A DNA stretch of 64,000 bases from NCBI GenBank assembly GCA_002269645.1, contig NIVC01003676.1:19410-83409 (forward strand), in the 5' to 3' direction. Under the pieces are notes generated by a model, which saw only the letters and a list, made by a program, of their open reading frames with translations, was not told the origin of the DNA and ran no database searches. Of the stretch, positions 9,221 to 54,585 are shown in pieces (position 1 is the stretch's first letter; the number at the start of each line of letters is the position of its first letter). The DNA is from Macrostomum lignano (taxonomy: Eukaryota). The position numbers and the translations under genes are program-made.

Positions 9221-9617
9221 CATTTAGTGCGTCGGAAAACGTCACAGGACACGTCACAGTTTTACAAGCGAAAAGAGGTGAGAAAGCGATAGCTCCTAGA
9301 CAAACCTTTTTATTGATAATTCAGTATGGAAGGCCAGGTGCATAGTAAATATTGAACCAATAATATCTAAGGAAAGTTGGAAAGCCTCTCTATCGGACCC
9401 TCGGGGGGTCTTTTAAGACGTTACAATAGCAATCCCGCCCGCTCAAGGTTGATGTCTCTCTTGAGTTCCTCTTCTTGTTTTTTCTCTCTTTCCCCTCTTC
9501 TCACTTCTCTCTTCTCTCTACCCTCTTCTCTGCCTTCTCTCCCCTCTCTTCCCTTTCCACTCCCGTTAATAATTCGGTATGGTAGGGCAGGTGCATAGTA
9601 AATATCTGATCGATATA

Positions 9618-9890
9618 TACTCAACAACATCAAAAAGTCGCCATCACAGAAGATTCCGTCTGTGGTCGCCACTTTTGAGAGTGCAGGTGAAGTCTGTCGC
9701 TGTAGACTTGTAGCTACGTCGCGGCAGACTTAGGTTGAGGGAACGAAGTGGGCGAGCGGTGTGCGAGGGTTGGACGGATTAAAGCCACCCAGATCAGTTT
9801 TCTCGTATCTTTTATTTCGGAATAGTCCAAGAGAAATTGCTCACTGGCGCATACGAGCGTAGAGTGGCGACTTTTCAATGTTGCTGAGTA
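9618..9890. mobile_element. Tc1/mariner-type MITE, 273 bp, 26-bp TIRs, TA flanks
   Basis: TACTCAACAACATCAAAAAGTCGCCA (9618-9643) vs the reverse complement of 9865-9890 matches at 23/26; TA on both sides. Confidence 0.7.
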
Positions 9891-10969
9891 TATAATACTT
9901 ACGGTTAAAAGCACACCCGTAATATTTCTCAGTAAGTGATTTTTTGGCTAGTCCAGACTCCTAGCTTAAGGCGTCTTTGGAACTGACTAAGATCAGTAGG
10001 GGACCAGGGTAGGGAGGGATATCCCGATCAACATACGTGAACGTTACCAATCGTCTCTATCTCTCTTCCCCTTCCAAAAGTTTTTCAGGCGCCATATGTA
10101 CAATATTAAAAGTCTCCAGGATCGCAATTCAACTGTGCTTAGCAACGTCAATTACGAGAGCTCACAACATCACTCATCACTGTACAGTTAGAGATGATTG
10201 CTACTCAAAATGGCCTTCTTAACAAAGCAGCGGCCCCCTTACCCCATTCCAAAACCCGTCAAAGCTTAATATCAGTTTTACGCCAATTAGTTAAAATGTT
10301 TTTTATTATATCAGTTACCTTCTAAACCAGCCCACTCGACCACCATGCGAGAGTAACAGCTATATACTACAGAAAGAGCATTTTCTAGTAAAACAAATCA
10401 TTTTTACAGTTTAAATTTTCGGTTAAAGCGCGTTTCCGGTGCACTGAGTAAATTGGTTTAATAACACGGATAAAGTGAAATTACGATGTATAACTTTTTT
10501 ATAACTAGAATCAGTTGCCACTGACTTCGTTCGCAGGAACGAAGAATATTGCAATGTTTTCTTAGAAATTGTATTAAGAAGTAAATTTAATTTAACAGTT
10601 AAACTTTGCTGTTGAAGGAAGGAATAAGAGATACAAAAAGCAACAGACTCATACAGTGTGTGAAAAAGATTGGTGAATCGGGACACAGGTAGTTGCGTTA
10701 AGGTAGAAGCGCAAGACTGCACGGACAGCGGCAGGTTCAGATATGAATATAAAAGCAGGTAGCCGGGCTCAACCCTAAGGCTGCTTTCCCCGACGCTGAA
10801 ACCTCCGGCCCGAGTGCAAGTGCACTTTAAGCGGCATTGTCGCACAACCAGCGAGAGGCATTACTGCCCATTCTGCCAACTTCCCTGAGCAGGCACACAA
10901 GCGCGCGGATACGCACGCAGTCATACGCACAGGCACACACTCACACAGGAGTGTACAGCGGCCCTAACT

Positions 10970-11155
10970 TTATTTATCGTTAGGCATGTACACTTCACTG
11001 TGCCTTGGGGGTTGGCCCTCAAAGGCCGTTAATTGCACGAGCAAACTCAATCTGAGATTCCAATTTAGCCCCAAATTAATGTGACGCACTAGAAATCGAG
11101 CCTGGGCCGCTGGCACATCAGAGCGCCGAGCTAGACCACTGGACTACATCGACGG
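10970..11155 (-). mobile_element. tRNA-derived SINE candidate
   Basis: The minus strand reads GTCGATGTAGTCCAGTGGTCTAG (A-box-like) ... GGCTCGATTTC (B-box-like), then a body ending in an A-rich ATAAATAAAG tail. Confidence 0.5.
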
Positions 11156-11904
11156 AGGTGCATCGGTACAACATGGAGAATGCACGTAAGGAGCCCAAGC
11201 AGAAGCATGTAGCTAATAGGTCCCCACATCCGTAGGGAGCCTCAGAACTCCAAGACAGCCTACCATCTCTTATTATTCTTCACATATCGAGCCCAGTTAA
11301 TCCGTTTTGGAGTCTTCCTTCATCACTGAATGTAGAAGCCGTATGCCTCGAGCTCGCGCATGCACAGGTAATCACTGAGATGACTCAGTATGCGAACTTT
11401 GCTCCCAGTCATGCCGCACGTCACGTTTCTCATTTTGAAATGCTGCGTCACCTTTACGCCGTCCACTAGTATTTCAAAGTTTTCAACCGCTCCGGAGCGT
11501 GACCCAGCCTGTTGTACACGGTGACGTAAGCCACAACAGCCGTCTTGACTAGGTCAGCCCCTCCATTGGTGTGAATGCAGGAGCCACTATCGAAGTTCGA
11601 ATCCGCATTTCCGTCCATGTTATTAGTGCACAAGCCGCCATGGGCTACCGAATGTTGGCTGCAGTTGAATTGTAGCTTCTGAGGAGCTGAAGACGGCTTC
11701 ACGGTGTTATATACTTTCACGGTAACATTTTACAATTAACCATTACATATGCGAAAAAGTTCGTAGTGATTAAAACGCTCTCTGTGAATCGCCAGCACCA
11801 AGGGGCGTCAGCACCAATGATCAAAGCAAGAGTGAGAGATGTACAAACTACAGCCTTACAGGGACCACGAGCGCAACATTTGCTGTTGTTGCCGAAATGA
11901 GAGG

Positions 11905-12245: not shown

Positions 12246-12572
12246 AGATGTGACACAAGCACTCACTAATAGACAACAGGTGTGACACACAAGCACTCAC
12301 TAATAGACAACAGGTGTGACACACAAGCACTCACTAATAGACAACAGGTGTGACACACAAGCACTCACTAATAGACAGCAGATGTGACACAAGCGCTCAC
12401 TAATAGAGATGTGACACACAAGCACTCACTAATAGACAACAGGTGTGACACACAAGCACTCACTAATAGACAACAGATGTGACACACAAGCACTCACTAA
12501 TAGACAACAGGTGTGACACACAAGCACTCACTAATAGACAACAGGTGTGACACACAAGCACTCATTAATAGA
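12246..12572. repeat. 34-bp minisatellite (CACTAATAGACAACAGGTGTGACACACAAGCACT), about 9-10 copies
   Basis: Direct read. Confidence 0.95.
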
Positions 12573-12812
12573 CATATTAGGAGTCGACTCGATAATCTCT
12601 TGCATGCTTACAGAGGCGTCACAAGGTGGGGTGGGGGAGACAAAGCATTGACATGTTTCTTATAGCTTTTGCTTTATCTGGGGGAGGGACATATCCCCCA
12701 GACCCCCCTCGGTGGCGACGCCTCAGCTCGCTTAATAACTACAATACATGTAGATAGTTTTTACGGATATTGTGCGGTAACGTTCTTTGTGGTATTTTAA
12801 AAGTTGTACACC

Positions 12813-14697
12813 ATTTTACCCTCGATTTTGAACAAGGAGAACTTCGAAACTGACAAACTCCTCTTCAATATTGACACTCTATGGTCGGGCACTCAAAATC
12901 TACAATCAATATTGACAGATCAAGCTTCATTTTTGACAAACTCTGGTTCAATTTTGACAATGCACGTTTAGTCAACTTCTCCTGGGAGAATTCGGTAACA
13001 AAGTAATCAAATGAAAGCCTGAACGGGGCTGAAGTGAGCTGTGCAATATCAGCTTATTCTGATTTTGCTTTTTGGATCTACAAGTATTGATAAAATTTAT
13101 TTTTCTCTATCCTTTACACACACAGACTAAAATAGCCTGACTGGTTGGGCTGTAAAGTCTGATTCTATTTTGACAGAGTTGCTTCAAAACTGACACTCTA
13201 TGGTTTGTGTACCCAAAAAGTCCGCTTCATTTTTGACAACTCCGAATCAATATTGAACAGTTAACAATCGATTTTGACTAAGACATTTTTTGAAATAGAT
13301 TTTGACAATTTTTACTAAGATTTCTCTCTTGAGGGGGGGGGGTACTTGCTATTTGGGGGGATGTTTGCTACCTGGATGATGCTTGCTATCTGCAAGATGC
13401 TTGCTATCTGGGTGGATGTTTGCTACCTGGATGATGCTTGCTATCTGCAAGATGCTTGCTATCTGGGGGATGCTTGCTATCTGCAAGATGCTTGCTATCT
13501 GGGGGATGCTTGCTATCTGGGGGATGCTTGCTATCTGGGGGATGCTTGCTATCTGGGGGATGCTTGCTATCTGGGGGATGCTTGCTATCTGCAAAATGCT
13601 TGCTATCTGGGGGATGCTTGCTATCTGCAAGATGCTTGCTATCTGGGTGCACGCTTGCTATCTGGGTGGATGCTTGCTATCTGCAGGATGCTTGCTATCT
13701 GGGTGGATGCTTGCTATCTGGGGGATGCTTGCTATCTGGGGGATGCTTGCTATCTGGGGGATGCTTGCTATCTGCAGGATGCTTGCTATCTGGGGGATGC
13801 TTGCTATCTGGGGGATGCTTGCTATCTGGGGGATGCTTGCTATCTGGGGGATGCTTGCTATCTGCAGGATGCTTGCTATCTGGGTGGATGCTTGCTATCT
13901 GGGGGATGCTTGCTATCTGGGGGATGCTTGCTGTCTGGGGGATGCTTGCTATCTGCAGGATGCTTGCTATCTGGGTGTATGCTTGCTATCTGGATGGATG
14001 CTTGCTATCTGGGTGTATGCTTGCTATCTTGGGATGTTAAATGACCGGTCTTTTGCTAGAGTCCCTTGAGAGAGCAGGGACTCTAGCAAGCATCCCTGGA
14101 TAGAAAGATTCCCATACATGTACTCGTAGATACATGCAGCCTGTACCCCCTCTCCCAAATAGCAAGTACCCCCCCCCTCAAGAGAGAAATCTTAGTAAAA
14201 ATTGTCAAAATCTATTTCAAAAAATGTCTTAGTCAAAATCGATTGTTAACTGTTCAATATTGATTCGGAGTTGTCAAAAATGAAGCGGACTTTTTGGGTA
14301 CACAAACCATAGAGTGTCAGTTTTGAAGCAACTCTGTCAAAATAGAATCAGACTTTACAGCCCAACCAGTCAGGCTATTTTAGTCTGTGTGTGTAAAGGA
14401 TAGAGAAAAATAAATTTTATCAATACTTGTAGATCCAAAAAGCAAAATCAGAATAAGCTGATATTGCACAGCTCACTTCAGCCCCGTTCAGGCTTTCATT
14501 TGATTACTTTGTTACCGAATTCTCCCAGGAGAAGTTGACTAAACGTGCATTGTCAAAATTGAACCAGAGTTTGTCAAAAATGAAGCTTGATCTGTCAATA
14601 TTGATTGTAGATTTTGAGTGCCCGACCATAGAGTGTCAATATTGAAGAGGAGTTTGTCAGTTTCGAAGTTCTCCTTGTTCAAAATCGAGGGTAAAAT
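12813..14697. mobile_element. Foldback-type element: inverted arms 12813-13357 and 14154-14697 around an asymmetric spacer
   Basis: The arms are exact reverse complements over the stretches compared, apart from a G10/C9 run. They contain recurring TTGACA sub-repeats. No ORF. Confidence 0.85.
13358..14035. repeat. 18-bp minisatellite (GGGGGATGCTTGCTATCT) filling the foldback spacer
   Basis: Direct read; it explains the repetitive ORFs at 13346-14069. Confidence 0.95.
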
Positions 14698-14744
14698 TAT
14701 GTAAAACAATATATATATAGAGATAGTAAAACTTTATCGCATTA

Positions 14745-14990
14745 AGATAGCAACAGATTAGCAGCAGATTAGCAACAGATTAGCAACAGATTAGTAACAG
14801 ATTAGCAACAGATTAGCAACAGATTAGCAACAGATTAGTAACAGATTAGCAACAGATTAGCAACAGATTAGCTACAGATTAGCAACAGATTAGCAACAGA
14901 TTAGCAACAGATTAGCAACAGATTAGCAACAGATTAGCTACAGATTAGCAACAGATTAGCAACAAATTAGCAACAAATTAGCAACAGATT
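14745..14990. repeat. 11-bp minisatellite (ACAGATTAGCA), about 22 copies
   Basis: Direct read. Confidence 0.95.
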
Positions 14991-15086
14991 ATCTTATTGT
15001 TATTTGAACTCCATTATTATAAATTTTGTTAGTACTTCGGCGCAAATCATCTCGTCTCACACTTATAGCCAAGACTTGCTGGCTTC

Positions 15087-18000
15087 TTAGTTGTTGTACA
15101 GAGCCAAAAGCTTGGCATCAGCGTTGCCGGCCACAGCAGCAAAGCTGCTCGGAATGACCGTTGACTGAAACAGCCAGCATTCGAGTGTGGCAGTCCTGAA
15201 CAGGACGAACAGGCAGTTGGTCAGCTGCGAGCAGCGCAGCAGGCATTCAATATCCGACCTCATTTGAGTCAGAGCAGCAATAAGGCTGGTCGATGTCATC
15301 GAATAGCTTGGTTGGATCGCATTGGCAACTTCGTTGTCCGGGACGGCTTAAAAATTATTATTGAATTATTAGAATCGATAGCTGATTTAAAATGAGGTAG
15401 AATGATGTTTCTGGAAAAAGTTTCAAAAATCTGTACATATGTAGCCATAGCAACTCTGGGGATCCCTTTATTACACACCGCTAGTCCTTTAAAAGTAGGC
15501 CGCATCACCATGGTGGTATTCCATGATAGCAAAATACCTCGGCATCTAGAGGTCAAAGAAAGTCAATCAATTTCTCTCACTTTGAGAAAAACCAAGAAGG
15601 ATTGGCCATGGACAATAAAGTTGGGCTTAATCATGGACTTCTATACTTAGCATCTGGACTGGAAGCGAAAAAATTCGCGTTACCACATGAGGCCATCAGA
15701 AATGTATTTAATTTTTTATCGCGAGGCAACGACGCAAATTCAAACTGATTAATTTCATTAATTATAATGAAATTAAATTATATACATGTAATTTAAAACG
15801 AATTACATATTAATTCGAATTATATACATGTTGTTATATATATTAGCAGTGTGCAGAGAAAAAGATGCATGTGTGCATATGTCACTTGAACAAATCGGTA
15901 AGAAACGAGAGTAGGCAGTATTAACAAAGGACTGAACAGCTTAGATGTGACACGAAAGCAGGTCAGTGGCGTGTCAGACAGATTGAAAAGCATCATCGAC
16001 ACAAATCAAAGTTGTTAGTATGAACTGCCACTGGAAAGTTTAGCCGACTTTCGCTTACTTTTGGCTCCAGCTCCACCAACCGAAATATCTTTGACCAAAT
16101 TTTTCATCATGCAGTTGAAAAATGCGCAAATAATTCCCTCTTTTACATCATGGCCAGCCGTGCACATCATCTGACCCATGAAATGTTCCAGGTAAATGCT
16201 GTCCTCCATCATCTCGTCAACAATGTGACAGAACAGTTACATCTGGTTGGGCGCGGTCAGCAGCCTTCTGCGCAGTTCATTGCTGATGATTTCTCTATGT
16301 TAGGCTCAGATGTGAAATGCAGTGAGCAGATGCGAGAGTACTTGGTGGGTTCAAAGTCCTTCCTCGGATTCGCCTTGTTCCATTTTCCAGTAGACTCGGC
16401 TTGTTAAGTGGATAACAATGAAACGTCATAATCCTGTCTGGTGTCGAACTATTAGCGAAGCCACTCCTGCAGCCGAATGCCGAACACTTATTCACCATAA
16501 TGGTTGGTTATTCGTAAGTGAGACTTTAGAATAACCGCATTGTCGAATTTCAGTGGGGCCGTAGACAAAAAGGGCATCGAAAGGAGAGAGGGGTTACCGA
16601 GGAGAGAGAGACATAAAGACTGAGGTGGTTTGCTGGAGTTTGGGCCATAGACAACGAAGTTGCAAACAGGCTGGGGGTTAAGAGGGTGGAAAGGAAGGAG
16701 ATGTGGAGAGAAAGAGAGAATAAAACGTAAATAGCTACATTCGCTTGGCCATGGAGAACCAGACGTCATATCCGATCAACTGGGGCAATCTGCCTGTCGA
16801 AAGTTTAGCCAACGTATCTAGCAGCGAACTCAATTGGATCTCAAGACTTTCCACATCTCAGAAGGACATGAAGGATAACGAAGACTTTTTGAACTTCTTG
16901 CACTTTCTTGAGACCTGGAATCGGCTGGGCATTCGATGAGCGAGATCATGGCTATCACGGGTCAAAAGTCCGAGAGCACGGTCCGGCGCTACCTGGCAGT
17001 TAAACGGGACAAGTCCCTGCAACAATGCAGCGATGCAGTGTCGCGTGCGTTGAACATGGGACAAAGCGCCGCGACCCACGGTCAAGTAACAATGCCTGCT
17101 GACATCAGCATCCAAAGTTCCATCGTGCAAGAAGCAGTGAGCGTGTCTGATGGTCGTCAGATGAACGGTCGGAATATCTTTATTATGAACAACTGCACTT
17201 TTAACAATTGCAATCTGTAATGGTCTTCGGCACTATGACAATTGCGCCATATTGATACTGCACAATTAACTTTCCATAGCGCTAATCTTTTGTTGTTGGT
17301 GTTTGCTGTTTTGTTCTAAAAATAGGTGTCCATTATCCCGAGTTTGAAATCATTATCCTGAAGTTTAAGTGAAAAAATAAATAAATGTGCTCATGGTTTA
17401 ACCATAGACGATTGCATTATCCTAAAGGCTGATTTATTTTGACAATGAAGGATATGCTTTCATTATGCAGAGTCAAATGAAGAAAGTGAGTTTAGTTGTA
17501 TTCGATATAAGCCGCAGCAGTTTTTGATAAATGCATATCTATGGAAACAATTGGCCTCATGTGGTAATTTTTTTTGCGAGAATTTTTTCGCTTCCAGTCC
17601 AGATGCTAAGTATAGAAGTCCATAGCTTAATGATAGAACAAAGTACATTATCTGAAAATACCAGCTTTATTATTAGCCATAGACTATAAGCTGCTGTAGC
17701 ATTTCATAAAAAAATAAGCGCACCTCAAATGAAATACATACTTCATTCATTCACTTGATCCCGATCTTAAATTTTAAATTCGATTCTTTCAAATATCCTA
17801 CTTACCCACGTAGACGTCAACCTCGCAGAAATTGAAGTAGGCCTGAGTGATAGCGGTCAGACCAGTTCGATTCTTGTACAGAGCCAGGTAGCGACCAACG
17901 ACAGGGGACGGGCAGGTCAGGCTGATAGGATTTGTAGCATCGGTGGGCGCTCCAGTAAAGTAGAAACAACGTTTGAATAGGTTCTCGCTGAAGCTGGACC

Positions 18001-19021
18001 AAGCGGCCGCGTCCGATGATATGCCTGCGAGTGGCAGGAGAATTTCGGTGAGCTAAAGCTGGTTGCAAATTTTTTATGGAGCATGGATTAAGATAGCAGA
18101 ATTTTCCTAACAATGAGTCCTCTTGTGTATCAAAAATACAAATAAGTGATCTGTGATCCGATTTACCTGAAACCCTAATGTCCGTAGTTCTAGGAACTGT
18201 AATCCTGAGAGCCGTAATCTTGTGAAATGTAATCCCAAGAACTTATAATCCTGAGAATTTATAATCCTGAGAACTGTAATCCTGAGAACTGTAATCCTGA
18301 GAACTGTAACCCTGAGAACTGTAATCCTGAGAACTGTGAAAGCCTGAAAATTGAGGATCTGAGGACTAAAATCCTTAGATACCGTAACGAGTACTATGAT
18401 CCTGGAAGCAATACCATCATTAGTTCTAGAAAACTTTCCTAGAAAGAAATCAATACAGCCTGGAAAAGCGGCTCAACTCACTCACCAAGGCTAATCTGGG
18501 TAAACCGAACCTCGTCCGTGCTATCCAGTCGGTTCCAGACATTGACCCCGGCGATTCGGTAGGACTGCAGCAGGTCCAGCATCCACCAGGGCACCGTGTC
18601 GCTGCCGGAGTTCAACACGCACTGAGCGGCGTCCACGTAATGCCCATCAGTGTTGCCATTGTAGGCCAGCTCAGCAGACTGCCCAGACGTGTGCTGGGAC
18701 GAGATTTTTGCCGGCAGAAACTTCGGCATCAGGACGCTTCGACCTGGGCGTTGGGACGAGTTGTGTGTCTAAGAGTTATGAACTTCTAGACTAAAAAGTC
18801 ATGCAAGCTCGCGACTCGATAGACTTAGAATCCACGGAGAGTATCAACATGTATAATCCTATATGCTAAAAATGAGTTTTTGTATGTATGTAGCTATTCT
18901 CATTTACATCCTCAAAAGCGATGCAACAACTAGGTAAATGTAAACTAACTATAAACTCACCGTCCAGACGGACGAAAAGAAGATTTAACAAAGTAAACAG
19001 AAGCAGAATGGATTTCTCCAT
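15087..19021 (-). CDS. Secreted F-type lectin (fucolectin/FTP) + PAN/apple protein, about 265 aa; exons 18961-19021, 18486-18743, 17806-18024, 15087-15346
   Basis: All three introns are GT-AG and phase 1, and the summed length is 798 nt. Signal peptide MEKSILLLFTLLNLLFVRLDG; FTP motifs AYNGN, PWWMLDL, V.VWNRLD, C..PVVGRYL and FCEVDVY; PAN pattern IECLLRCSQLTNC..VLF.....ECWL. Confidence 0.82.
16015..16498 (-). pseudogene. Internally deleted THAP9/P-type transposase: THAP domain joined to a C-terminal fragment
   Basis: MVNKCSAFGC..FHCYP; restoring one A in the run near 16383 gives EKWNKANPRKDFEPTKYSRICSLHF (C2CH). Then C..GH....I...FFN..MKN tail. The catalytic core is absent. Confidence 0.8.
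16745..17220 (+). pseudogene. Crypton/DUF3504-like tyrosine recombinase remnant (recognisable C-terminus 16912-17220)
   Basis: LESAGHSMSEIMAITGQKSESTVRRY matches the YR box II pattern AG....IM..TGHKS.....Y (His to Gln), with a Crypton-like NNCTFN tail. Most of the core is missing. Confidence 0.65.
18190..18350. repeat. 15-bp minisatellite (GAGAACTGTAATCCT) in lectin intron 2
   Basis: Direct read. Confidence 0.85.
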
Positions 19022-19544
19022 GACGAATATTTCTCAATGAGCAGGGGATGCAATTAGAGCTGAGTTGGGCTGTCCGTCTATCAGCCAAAAGAGAAGGGTA
19101 GGCTCAGTTTTATCAGTTTAAGTTTTAGCTTTAGTGTAGATTTTACTGTCAGGGCCTCATTAATCATAGAGGGTGGCTGCGACTCCTCATAAACTGAAAA
19201 AGCTCTAAGGCTCCCTAACCCCACACTGCCGGTTGAATGTCCCCCCCCCCTCCACAGAACTTGCATATAGAATATAGAGGCCTTATATTGTTTTTCTGGA
19301 CCAAAGTAGTAGAATTAAAAGCCTTGCTATATAATTGGATATCTCTACCTGAGCGGCTGTATCTGACAATGTATCCGTAAGCCAGCCTAGCCTAATCAAT
19401 ATTTTATGGATTTGATTCTGGAAGGACGGAGTTTTAGTCCATTCATCCAAACAATTGCTGCATTGCCTACTTTTTTGAAATATTTTATAGCTTGCTTTTT
19501 CACTGAAAATTTGTAAAGTAGCTAAGGAGACACAGAGCTAATAA

Positions 19545-19730
19545 AAGTAAGCTATGTAGCTAATAAAAGTAAGCTATGGAGCTAACAAGAGTAAGCTATG
19601 GAGCTAACAAGAGTAAGCTATGGAGCTAACAAGAGTAAGCTATGGAGCTAACAAGAGTAAGCTATGGAGCTAACAAGAGTAAACTATGCGAGCTAACAAG
19701 AATAAGCTATGCGCTAACAAGAGTAAGCTA
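19545..19730. repeat. 22-bp minisatellite (GAGCTAACAAGAGTAAGCTATG), about 8 copies
   Basis: Direct read. Confidence 0.92.
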
Positions 19731-19949
19731 TGAAGTTTACAACAGTGATAAAATCTATGAGGCTTACATGGCTTTGTTTAATCCTTATAACAAACTGGTT
19801 TGCGTGGTAGCAAGTTATAGAAGCTTTTATGCTCAGCAGAGTTTACTTGGAATATAGTAATTATTTGCTGCTATCACCACACCCAGTCCACTCATCTGTG
19901 GACCAGCACCAGCGCTGGTATTAGGAACCAATCGAACAGCCTGGTTCTC

Positions 19950-30734: not shown

Positions 30735-31312
30735 AAGATTAGGCTAATGTCTATGGTCTGGCTAAGATCTAGGGTCTTACTAATGTGCTAATGTCTATGG
30801 CCTGTCTAAGATCTAGGGTCTGGCTAATGTCTATGGTCTGGCTAAGATCTAGGGTCTGGCTAATGTCTATGGTCTGGCTAAGATCTAGGGTCTGGCTAAT
30901 GTCTATGGTCTGGCTAAGATCTAGGTTCTGGCTAATGTCTATGGTCTGGCGAATGTCTAGGGCCTGGCTAAGATCTAGGGTCTGGCTAATGTCTATGTTC
31001 TGGCTAAGATCTAGGTTCTGGCTAATGTCTAGGGTCTGGCTAAGATCTAGGTTCTGGCTAATGTCTAGGGCCTGGCTAAGATCTAGGTTCTGGCTAATGT
31101 CTAGGGCCTGGCTAAGATCTAGGTTCTGGCTAATGTCTAGGGTCTGGCTAAGATCTAGGTTCTGGCTAATGTCTAGGGCCTGGCTAAGATCTAGGTTCTG
31201 GCTAATGTCTAGGGCCTGGCTAAGATCTAGGTTCTGGCTAATGTCAAGGGCCTGGCTAAGATCTAGGGTCTGGCTAATGTCTACGGTCTGGCTAAGATCT
31301 AGGGTCTGGATA
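30735..31312. repeat. 36-bp (2x18) minisatellite (GGCTAAGATCTAGGGTCTGGCTAATGTCTATGGTCT)
   Basis: Direct read. Confidence 0.94.

Positions 31313-46949: not shown

Positions 46950-54585
<7,636 letters not shown>

Follow-up and report, generated by a model that had tools for sequence, protein, structure and literature searches.

Eukaryotic DNA transposons that move by a DDE transposase and those that move by a tyrosine recombinase (YR) normally belong to separate classes, and MarCry is the only described fusion of the two. A locus in the flatworm Macrostomum lignano raises the question of whether such a fusion also exists in an animal. Within a stretch of 64,000 nucleotides (nt) (assembly GCA_002269645.1, contig NIVC01003676.1, positions 19,410–83,409; the whole stretch is called the window, and coordinates are window positions unless another locus is named), one transposon encloses remnants of a THAP-type transposase gene and of a Crypton-type YR gene. 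An earlier sequence-only reading had suggested that its parent was a two-gene hybrid. On balance, our analysis leans towards a fused composite of the MarCry kind, dead and non-autonomous, which would have been moved in trans via its outer ends. Retrieved proteins (P-numbers) and retrieved loci or contigs (L-numbers) carry the labels of the present analysis.

One element between long terminal inverted repeats

The element is a single unit of 1,993 bp (15632–17624) with one pair of terminal inverted repeats (TIRs), flanked by a 7-bp target-site duplication (TSD). Its features are, from left to right:

15625–15631, unstranded: left TSD copy, GCTTAAT, read directly and identical to 17625–17631.
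15632–15695, plus strand: left TIR, 63–64 nt, beginning CATGGACTTCTATAC.
16278 to 16018, minus strand: C-terminal tail of the transposase, its last ~87 codons, with the stop codon at 16015–16017 and a premature in-frame stop at 16237–16239.
16276–16290, minus strand: transposase deletion junction, where the end of the THAP domain is joined to the tail (THAP homology stops at ~16285, tail homology runs from 16278).
16285–16498, minus strand: THAP zinc-finger domain remnant, which starts at ATG 16498 and shifts frame once, between 16397 and 16346.
16499–16750, unstranded: divergent intergenic region, 253 bp from the THAP ATG to the YR ATG, containing CCGTAGAC at 16559 and CCATAGAC at 16645.
16751–16912, plus strand: N-terminal 54–56 codons of the YR (MENQTSYPINW...FLHFLE), 95% identical to residues 270–331 of P0038.
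16910–16914, plus strand: YR deletion junction with a change of frame; ~318 codons (~0.95 kb) are gone.
16912–17220, plus strand: C-terminal ~100 codons of the YR in the other frame (DLESAGHSMSEIMAITGQKSESTVRRY...NCTFNNCNL, then stop), recognized by phmmer and alignment.
17221–17551, unstranded: non-coding region from the YR stop to the right TIR, with CATTATCC repeats and AACCATAGAC in 17333–17425.
17552–17624, minus strand: right TIR, 72–73 nt.
17625–17631, unstranded: right TSD copy, GCTTAAT, read directly.

The TIRs of about 60 bp and the exact 7-bp TSD that had been noticed before were recovered as arms of 63 and 72 nt with GCTTAAT on both sides. Each arm consists of an outer block (15633–15679 and 17577–17623; 47 nt, 98% complementary) and an inner block (15680–15695 and 17552–17567; 16 nt, 100% complementary), and relative to the left arm the right one has a 9-nt A-rich insertion between the two. 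The TSD copies abut the termini directly (CATGGAC... on the left, ...GTCCATA on the right), and a 30-mer of the element end occurs at only two sites in 64 kb, both of them TIRs (zero expected). The TIRs and the TSD are therefore real and far above chance. Nothing similar to the TIR was found at any other locus examined, including the other YR loci. Measured between the two start codons, the genes lie head to head 253 bp apart, in agreement with the earlier estimate of about 250 bp, and all close matches of the coding pieces are M. lignano proteins (72–100% identity).

A THAP-type transposase with its core deleted

The minus-strand THAP remnant that had been proposed from ATG 16498 is borne out by domain searches. 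It reads MVNKCSAFGCRSGF...FHCYPL from the ATG and ...WNKANPRKDFEPTKYSRICSLHF past the frameshift; once the two frames are joined, the 80 residues match the Pfam THAP family PF05485 (E 4e-11; 43.9 bits, cut-off 23.9), and the remnant aligns to P0002 and P0004 in two frames (tblastn).

The second piece of the gene reads ...LLTAPNQM(stop)LFCHIVDEMMEDS...AFFNCMMKNLVKD...KRKSAKLSSGSSY and corresponds to the final ~85 residues of P0003, a Logan-assembly protein, at 51–55% identity (tblastn of P0003 residues 156–239: 51%, E 2e-21). Upstream of this tail, where the window copy is deleted, the contig of P0003 (L004) and a locus of the leech Helobdella robusta (L005) have more than 150 further residues, including LQSDxIExRFGWLRxxSGxN and IYYxxxAVAxxxxxxxRCDxC; the Helobdella locus has a THAP domain followed by the same C-terminal region as the window tail. 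By homology, the window copy is thus a THAP-type transposase remnant with an internal deletion. The first of these strings we take to be the RNase H C-terminal motif of P and THAP9 transposases, as a lead only; it had no Pfam or PDB match. A string in the tail, LEHFMGQMM, was considered as the motif of the catalytic Glu and rejected: the remnant lies C-terminal to that motif, at the very end of the protein.

Assignment to the P superfamily is reasonable because of the THAP domain, the long TIRs starting with CATG, the 7-bp TSD and one weak THAP9_C match. The latter is a precomputed flag on P0003 and the sole domain support for the C-terminal region; our own hmmscan of P0003 and of longer translations gave no THAP9_C match, and no significant match of the C-terminal region to the solved P element transposase was obtained. 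The RNase H-fold DDE core with its GTP-binding insertion is deleted in the window copy and was found in none of the retrieved relatives. The earlier designation of a P-type element accordingly stands as to domain, termini and TSD, while its catalytic core was not seen. A protein search with the stitched THAP and tail returned mostly THAP-only proteins.

A CryptonA-type tyrosine recombinase with a clean internal deletion

On the plus strand, a YR remnant had been placed at 16745–17220; we find it at 16751–17220, a few bases away, and every other position named in that reading is likewise accurate to within a few bases. Its uninterrupted counterpart is an open reading frame (ORF) held by the chimeric M. 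lignano gene model P0038, which reads MENQTSYPINW...FLHFLE-SGDTADD...(~318 amino acids)...NHSIRVC-DLESAGHSMSEIMAITGQKSESTVRRYL... and whose YR part aligns by tblastn with residues 1–57 at 16751–16921 and residues 376–417 at 16912–17037. The N-terminal piece is homologous to the N-termini of P0010 and P0017, and the C-terminal piece is 100% identical to residues 650–691 of P0038, 977–1020 of P0009 and 257–299 of P0036. As P0038 runs uninterrupted between ends that are 95% and 100% identical to those in the window, the window YR is a clean internal deletion. Both genes have thus lost their central parts, as the sequence-only reading held: the transposase is reduced to THAP plus ~87 amino acids, and the YR lacks ~318 codons.

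The stitched YR fragment by itself had no Pfam match and no homologue in a word-indexed protein search; an exhaustive phmmer search with it recovered ten proteins (E 4.5e-32 to 5e-10). The family alignment conserves GERGxE (Arg), KN (Lys), NHCIRV (HxxR), TG(H/Q)K and RY, and 14 members were compared with Pfam, of which ten matched QRICH1-N (best 1e-8), nine Phage_integrase (best 6e-10) and six DUF3504 (best 3.8e-12). The YR profile matched XerA in the PDB across HxxR...GH...Y (E 0.005), and an AlphaFold2 model of the full-length relative P0010 (mean predicted local distance difference test score, pLDDT, 73) matched Cre over both domains (E 6.5e-10, TM score 0.67). The YR similarity proposed for this segment is thereby upheld, and the gene can be firmly classed as a CryptonA/DUF3504-class tyrosine recombinase.

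The uninterrupted parental ORF (P0008, P0038) has GERGRE, SKNKS, NHSIRV, TGQKS and RRY. The window copy keeps TGQKS...RRY only, with the Gln and the nucleophilic Tyr; the Arg, the Lys and HxxR lie within the deleted ~318 codons. Judged by its residues, the window copy cannot be active, because only the active-site Gln and Tyr remain. In M. lignano this family has multiple copies and is young (95–100% amino acid identity).

Three observations on the family stand apart from the origin of the element. First, the YR proteins end in F-x-(N/G)-C-x-F-x-x-C-x-F (NCTFNNCNL in the window, 17190–17220), a Cys/Phe motif also present in P0011, P0012, P0017, P0018 and P0025–P0029, far downstream of the catalytic Tyr and outside the Pfam matches. 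Second, the M. lignano models P0007, P0009, P0033 and P0038 (NACHT-WD40, EF-hand and others) took in pieces of this YR element as exons, owing to a cryptic GTGAG donor (17146) and an AG acceptor (16911–16912); they are annotation chimeras and gave no usable flanking information. Third, a scan of IMG/VR for YR relatives gave no match.

The two genes at other loci

A second M. lignano locus, L002, retrieved by way of a YR protein, carries both genes in another family that is ~50% diverged from that of the window (YR 47% identical at the amino acid level; transposase tail, L002 13561–13319, 52% identical). There an intact YR gene of 449 amino acids (10001–11350) lies 2 kb from a THAP-plus-tail remnant (~14000–13319). 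The YR gene sits within its own 23-nt inverted repeats (9723–9745 and 11547–11569), beside a hairpin (9617–9720), and no direct repeat flanks this unit. Such proximity is unlikely to be due to chance (our estimates range from improbable to very improbable), because no P-like remnant occurred in 118 kb of unselected Macrostomum DNA, comprising the remainder of the window and two loci of NACHT-WD paralogues from M. lignano (L003 and L010).

Elsewhere each gene was found alone. Three metagenomic contigs of ~2.1 kb each (L007, L008 and L009) have the YR by itself with bracketing inverted repeats of 16–24 nt and hairpins, and in the four stand-alone YR units, counting that of L002, the bracketing repeats are 1.74–1.84 kb apart. 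A further YR-only sequence, a Logan contig of 1.77 kb (L001), has no comparable bracketing repeat, its best pair (22 nt at 77%) falling on the ORF start and stop. Within 10 kb of the transposase relatives from Helobdella (L005) and ENA (L006) there is no YR; TIRs could not be delimited for the former, and the latter is interrupted by a retrotransposon insertion.

Around the window YR remnant there are no bracketing inverted repeats and no hairpins of the kind seen in the four stand-alone relatives, and the earlier remark that separate Crypton ends are not evident therefore holds for such repeats and hairpins. Exact-protein look-ups of the window ORFs (a 94-amino-acid ORF and seven ORFs in the cluster table) and exact-product look-ups for P0007, P0008 and P0009 returned no match.

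As to the stand-alone units themselves, their hairpins have arms of up to 51 nt at 96%, and their short bracketing inverted repeats contrast with the usual statement that Cryptons lack TIRs.

Origin of the pairing

How did the two genes come to share one pair of termini? In the reading that we cautiously prefer, the outer shell would be a THAP-transposase element of P-superfamily type, with its 63/72-nt TIRs starting CATGG and its 7-bp TSD, in whose 5' leader a CryptonA-type (DUF3504-class) YR gene would have come to sit divergently. Most likely a Crypton integrated into, or fused with, the P-like element, after which its terminal repeats were lost, as in MarCry-1_FO. The copy would then have been inserted as one unit, by a DDE-type transposase acting in trans, into an intron of the host gene, which encodes F5/8 type C and PAN domains, and two separate internal deletions of the interrupted-gap-repair type would have removed most of both genes. 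Interrupted gap repair in cut-and-paste elements, as known from P-element biology, yields internal deletions that keep both ends; as each of the two deletions spares both ends of its gene, we infer gap repair of a cut-and-paste element. Neither enzyme can be made from the window copy, and it is unlikely that the YR was from the start an obligate partner of the transposase.

The missing Crypton ends argue against a simple recent nesting, in which a single intragenic deletion would have kept them, and fit a fused unit. In addition, we count the recurrence of a YR beside a P-like remnant in the L002 family, and the published MarCry-1_FO precedent, in favour of a fused composite.

Several results weigh against it. 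The pair at L002 is convergent and that of the window divergent, and the L002 YR is intact within its own repeats next to a transposase remnant decayed by stops and frameshifts; L002 therefore looks like two separate elements. Among the loci retrieved there was no second copy with the window TIRs and no full-length copy, and L003 and L010, which had been fetched for another purpose, hold no copy of the window element. In the window itself the transposase remnant has a frameshift and a stop and the YR remnant neither, and the two parts may therefore not be of the same age. On the transposase side, the C-terminal region had no match in hmmscan or PDB searches (single sequence and profile), its structure model was unusable (pLDDT 34), and, with the DDE/RNase H core never seen, membership in the P superfamily draws on the THAP domain, the TIR/TSD type and the one weak precomputed THAP9_C match.

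We regard a native two-gene hybrid, whose autonomous parent would encode a YR that co-evolves with a P-type DDE transposase and could use both enzymes (cut-and-paste plus site-specific resolution or integration), as unlikely. It would account for two remnants head to head, 253 bp apart, in one TIR/TSD unit without Crypton ends inside, for full-length YR copies that retain all catalytic residues, and for an L002 family that diverged alike in both genes (47% and 52%) and again has them within 2 kb. However, the two families differ in the orientation of the pair, and at L002 an intact YR in its own 23-nt repeats lies next to a transposase remnant with stops and frameshifts. The THAP transposase relatives of Helobdella and ENA do without a YR within 10 kb, YR relatives come as YR-only contigs of ~1.8–2.2 kb, and no full-length two-gene copy was among the retrieved sequences.

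Slightly less probable again is a one-off nesting in situ, in which a P-like non-autonomous element came first, a Crypton inserted later, a random deletion followed and the composite never moved. Nested transposons are usual in this repeat-rich genome, where a foldback structure and several tandem arrays are found less than 3 kb away; M. lignano has multiple, young copies of the YR family, Cryptons of the same clade occur as autonomous units, and the transposase remnant looks more decayed than that of the YR. Yet the bracketing repeats and hairpins that a single intragenic deletion would spare are gone, the 253 bp upstream of the YR ATG are fewer than the 384 bp of upstream sequence in the L002 unit, and the recurrence at L002 is, at the low chance probabilities given above, unexpected.

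A bolder form of the hybrid, which we hold to be rather improbable, posits a Macrostomum lineage of autonomous dual-enzyme transposons in which a P-type DDE transposase and an intact CryptonA YR are co-inherited and co-diverge. The association occurs in two families whose proteins are ~50% diverged. If the reading is true, such an element would move in two ways, by TIR/TSD cut-and-paste and by site-specific integration of circles via CCATAGAC-type sites, and no earlier hybrid of this kind would be known from an animal.

Finally, a wholly YR-driven element, in which the TIRs and their 7-bp spacer would be a lox- or FRT-like site of a circular intermediate, the apparent TSD a shared crossover core and the THAP protein an accessory DNA-binding factor, is very improbable: inverted binding sites around a 6–8-bp core do resemble YR sites generally (those of Cre/loxP and Flp/FRT are built in this way), and another CATGGAC lies 26 nt to the left of it, but the C-terminus of the THAP protein is that of proteins which have a transposase-type region (LQSDxIExRFGWLR..., weak THAP9_C) and occur without a YR, stand-alone YR relatives have 16–24-nt repeats only, L002 lacks a flanking direct repeat, and no TIR-like sequence lies near any other YR locus.

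Comparison with known systems

For a fused composite, the nearest precedent is MarCry-1_FO of Fusarium oxysporum, in which a Mariner-type DDE transposase and a Crypton are fused between 16-bp TIRs with TA TSDs and which has four intact copies, more than 97% identical (Kojima & Jurka 2011, PMC3212892). The sequence-only reading had known of no described family encoding both enzyme classes; MarCry-1_FO is such a family (PMC3212892), and a 2026 paper lists no other Crypton for which a DDE transposase has been reported (PMC13465315). Its TSD is of the type of the DDE partner, and the composite was therefore moved by the DDE enzyme. Like MarCry-1_FO, the window element has genes for a Crypton YR and a DDE transposase within one TIR pair and a DDE-type TSD, although here as remnants only. 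The two differ in the partner (Tc1/Mariner there; THAP-type and P-like here, with a 63/72-nt TIR and a 7-bp TSD), in the recombinase (CryptonF with GCR1_C in a fungus; CryptonA/DUF3504-type in a flatworm) and in preservation (four intact copies there; one doubly deleted copy here).

The outer shell resembles the P superfamily (P element, Galileo, 1360) in its N-terminal THAP domain, its TIRs starting with CA/CATG, a TSD in the 7–8-bp range, the weak THAP9_C match of the relative P0003 and its internally deleted, non-autonomous state, which is frequent there. Galileo and 1360 make 7-bp TSDs. The window element differs in being without the RNase H/GTP-binding core, and we know of no P-family element that carries a YR gene.

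Cryptons are described as single-gene units without TIRs and with direct repeats of 4–6 bp at their flanks (PMC13465315). The window YR is like CryptonA/DUF3504 elements (PMC3212892; Glomhopper, PMC13465315), at the family level, in DUF3504, the QRICH1 N-domain, Phage_integrase, the R-K-HxxR-(H/Q)-Y residues and a Cre-like fold; it differs in lying inside long TIRs with a 7-bp TSD and in having lost two-thirds of the gene. Full-text searches of the literature found no element combining P/THAP and Crypton and no Cryptons described in Macrostomum.

Should other loci confirm the composite, a DDE element and a Crypton would have fused a second time and independently, P-like with CryptonA, and this would be the first case in an animal. 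Such fusions would then arise repeatedly and across kingdoms, and would offer Crypton YR genes a route to spread without ends of their own, which bears on how DUF3504 genes (ZMYM2–4, QRICH1, KCTD1) reached new loci before they were domesticated. The case would also be tractable, M. lignano being a transgenic laboratory model. If nesting is all there is, the locus holds an ordinary dead transposon in an intron.

Non-coding sequence and the CC(A/G)TAGAC motif

The intergenic copies CCGTAGAC and CCATAGAC lie at -192 and -107 from the YR ATG, and in L002 the motif occupies the same two positions upstream of the YR gene (9810 and 9894). Sites of CC(A/G)TAGAC in the window are at 16559, 16645, 17402 (3' of the YR) and 17677 (53 bp outside the right TIR), where the 14-mer GCCATAGACTATAA is identical to one found at L002, ~55 bp upstream of the THAP remnant; a 36-bp tandem array in the window also carries CCATAGAC in every unit. 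L002 has sites at 9630, 9707, 9810, 9894 and 14059 (count 6 versus ~0.65 expected), and both arms of its hairpin carry the motif. It may be a promoter or start-site element, a binding site of the recombinase or a Crypton crossover core. The direct copies at 16559 and 17402 are candidate boundary repeats of a Crypton, yet the motif also occurs elsewhere.

In shuffling tests, a single non-coding similarity stood out: local alignment of 17221–17551 with the hairpin region that precedes the YR gene of L002 scored 30 (z = 4.0; 1 of 200 shuffles did as well, without correction for 12 comparisons). We also considered L002 as a circular permutation of the window element, integrated via the intergenic CCATAGAC, and rejected it because both upstream sites remain before the L002 YR and there is no TIR–TIR junction between the L002 YR and transposase.

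Genomic setting and other repeats

The element sits within an intron of a minus-strand gene (~15090–19020) for a secreted protein, with a signal-peptide exon (~19020–18960), F5/8 type C (discoidin) exons (18720–18480 and 18050–17800; Pfam E 2.6e-7) and a PAN-domain exon (~15300–15090; E 2e-5). Coding content elsewhere in the window includes Otopetrin, leucine-rich repeat and WD40 proteins, and one window repeat matches an M. lignano contig at 87% identity.

Other repeats were noticed in passing. To the left of the host gene, 12803–14707 is a foldback-type element with 539-nt arms (99% complementary), between which lies an 18-bp tandem array of 38 copies (GGGGGATGCTTGCTATCT; 13337–14033); alternatively, the structure could have arisen when a palindrome was misassembled. 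Short-period tandem arrays (34, 11, 15, 22 and 36 bp) occur in introns and intergenic DNA at 12253–12574, 14748–14991, 18194–18337, 19535–19746 and ~30750–30950, and a long (AGC)n simple repeat coding for poly-serine at ~53300–53550 gave spurious tblastn matches.

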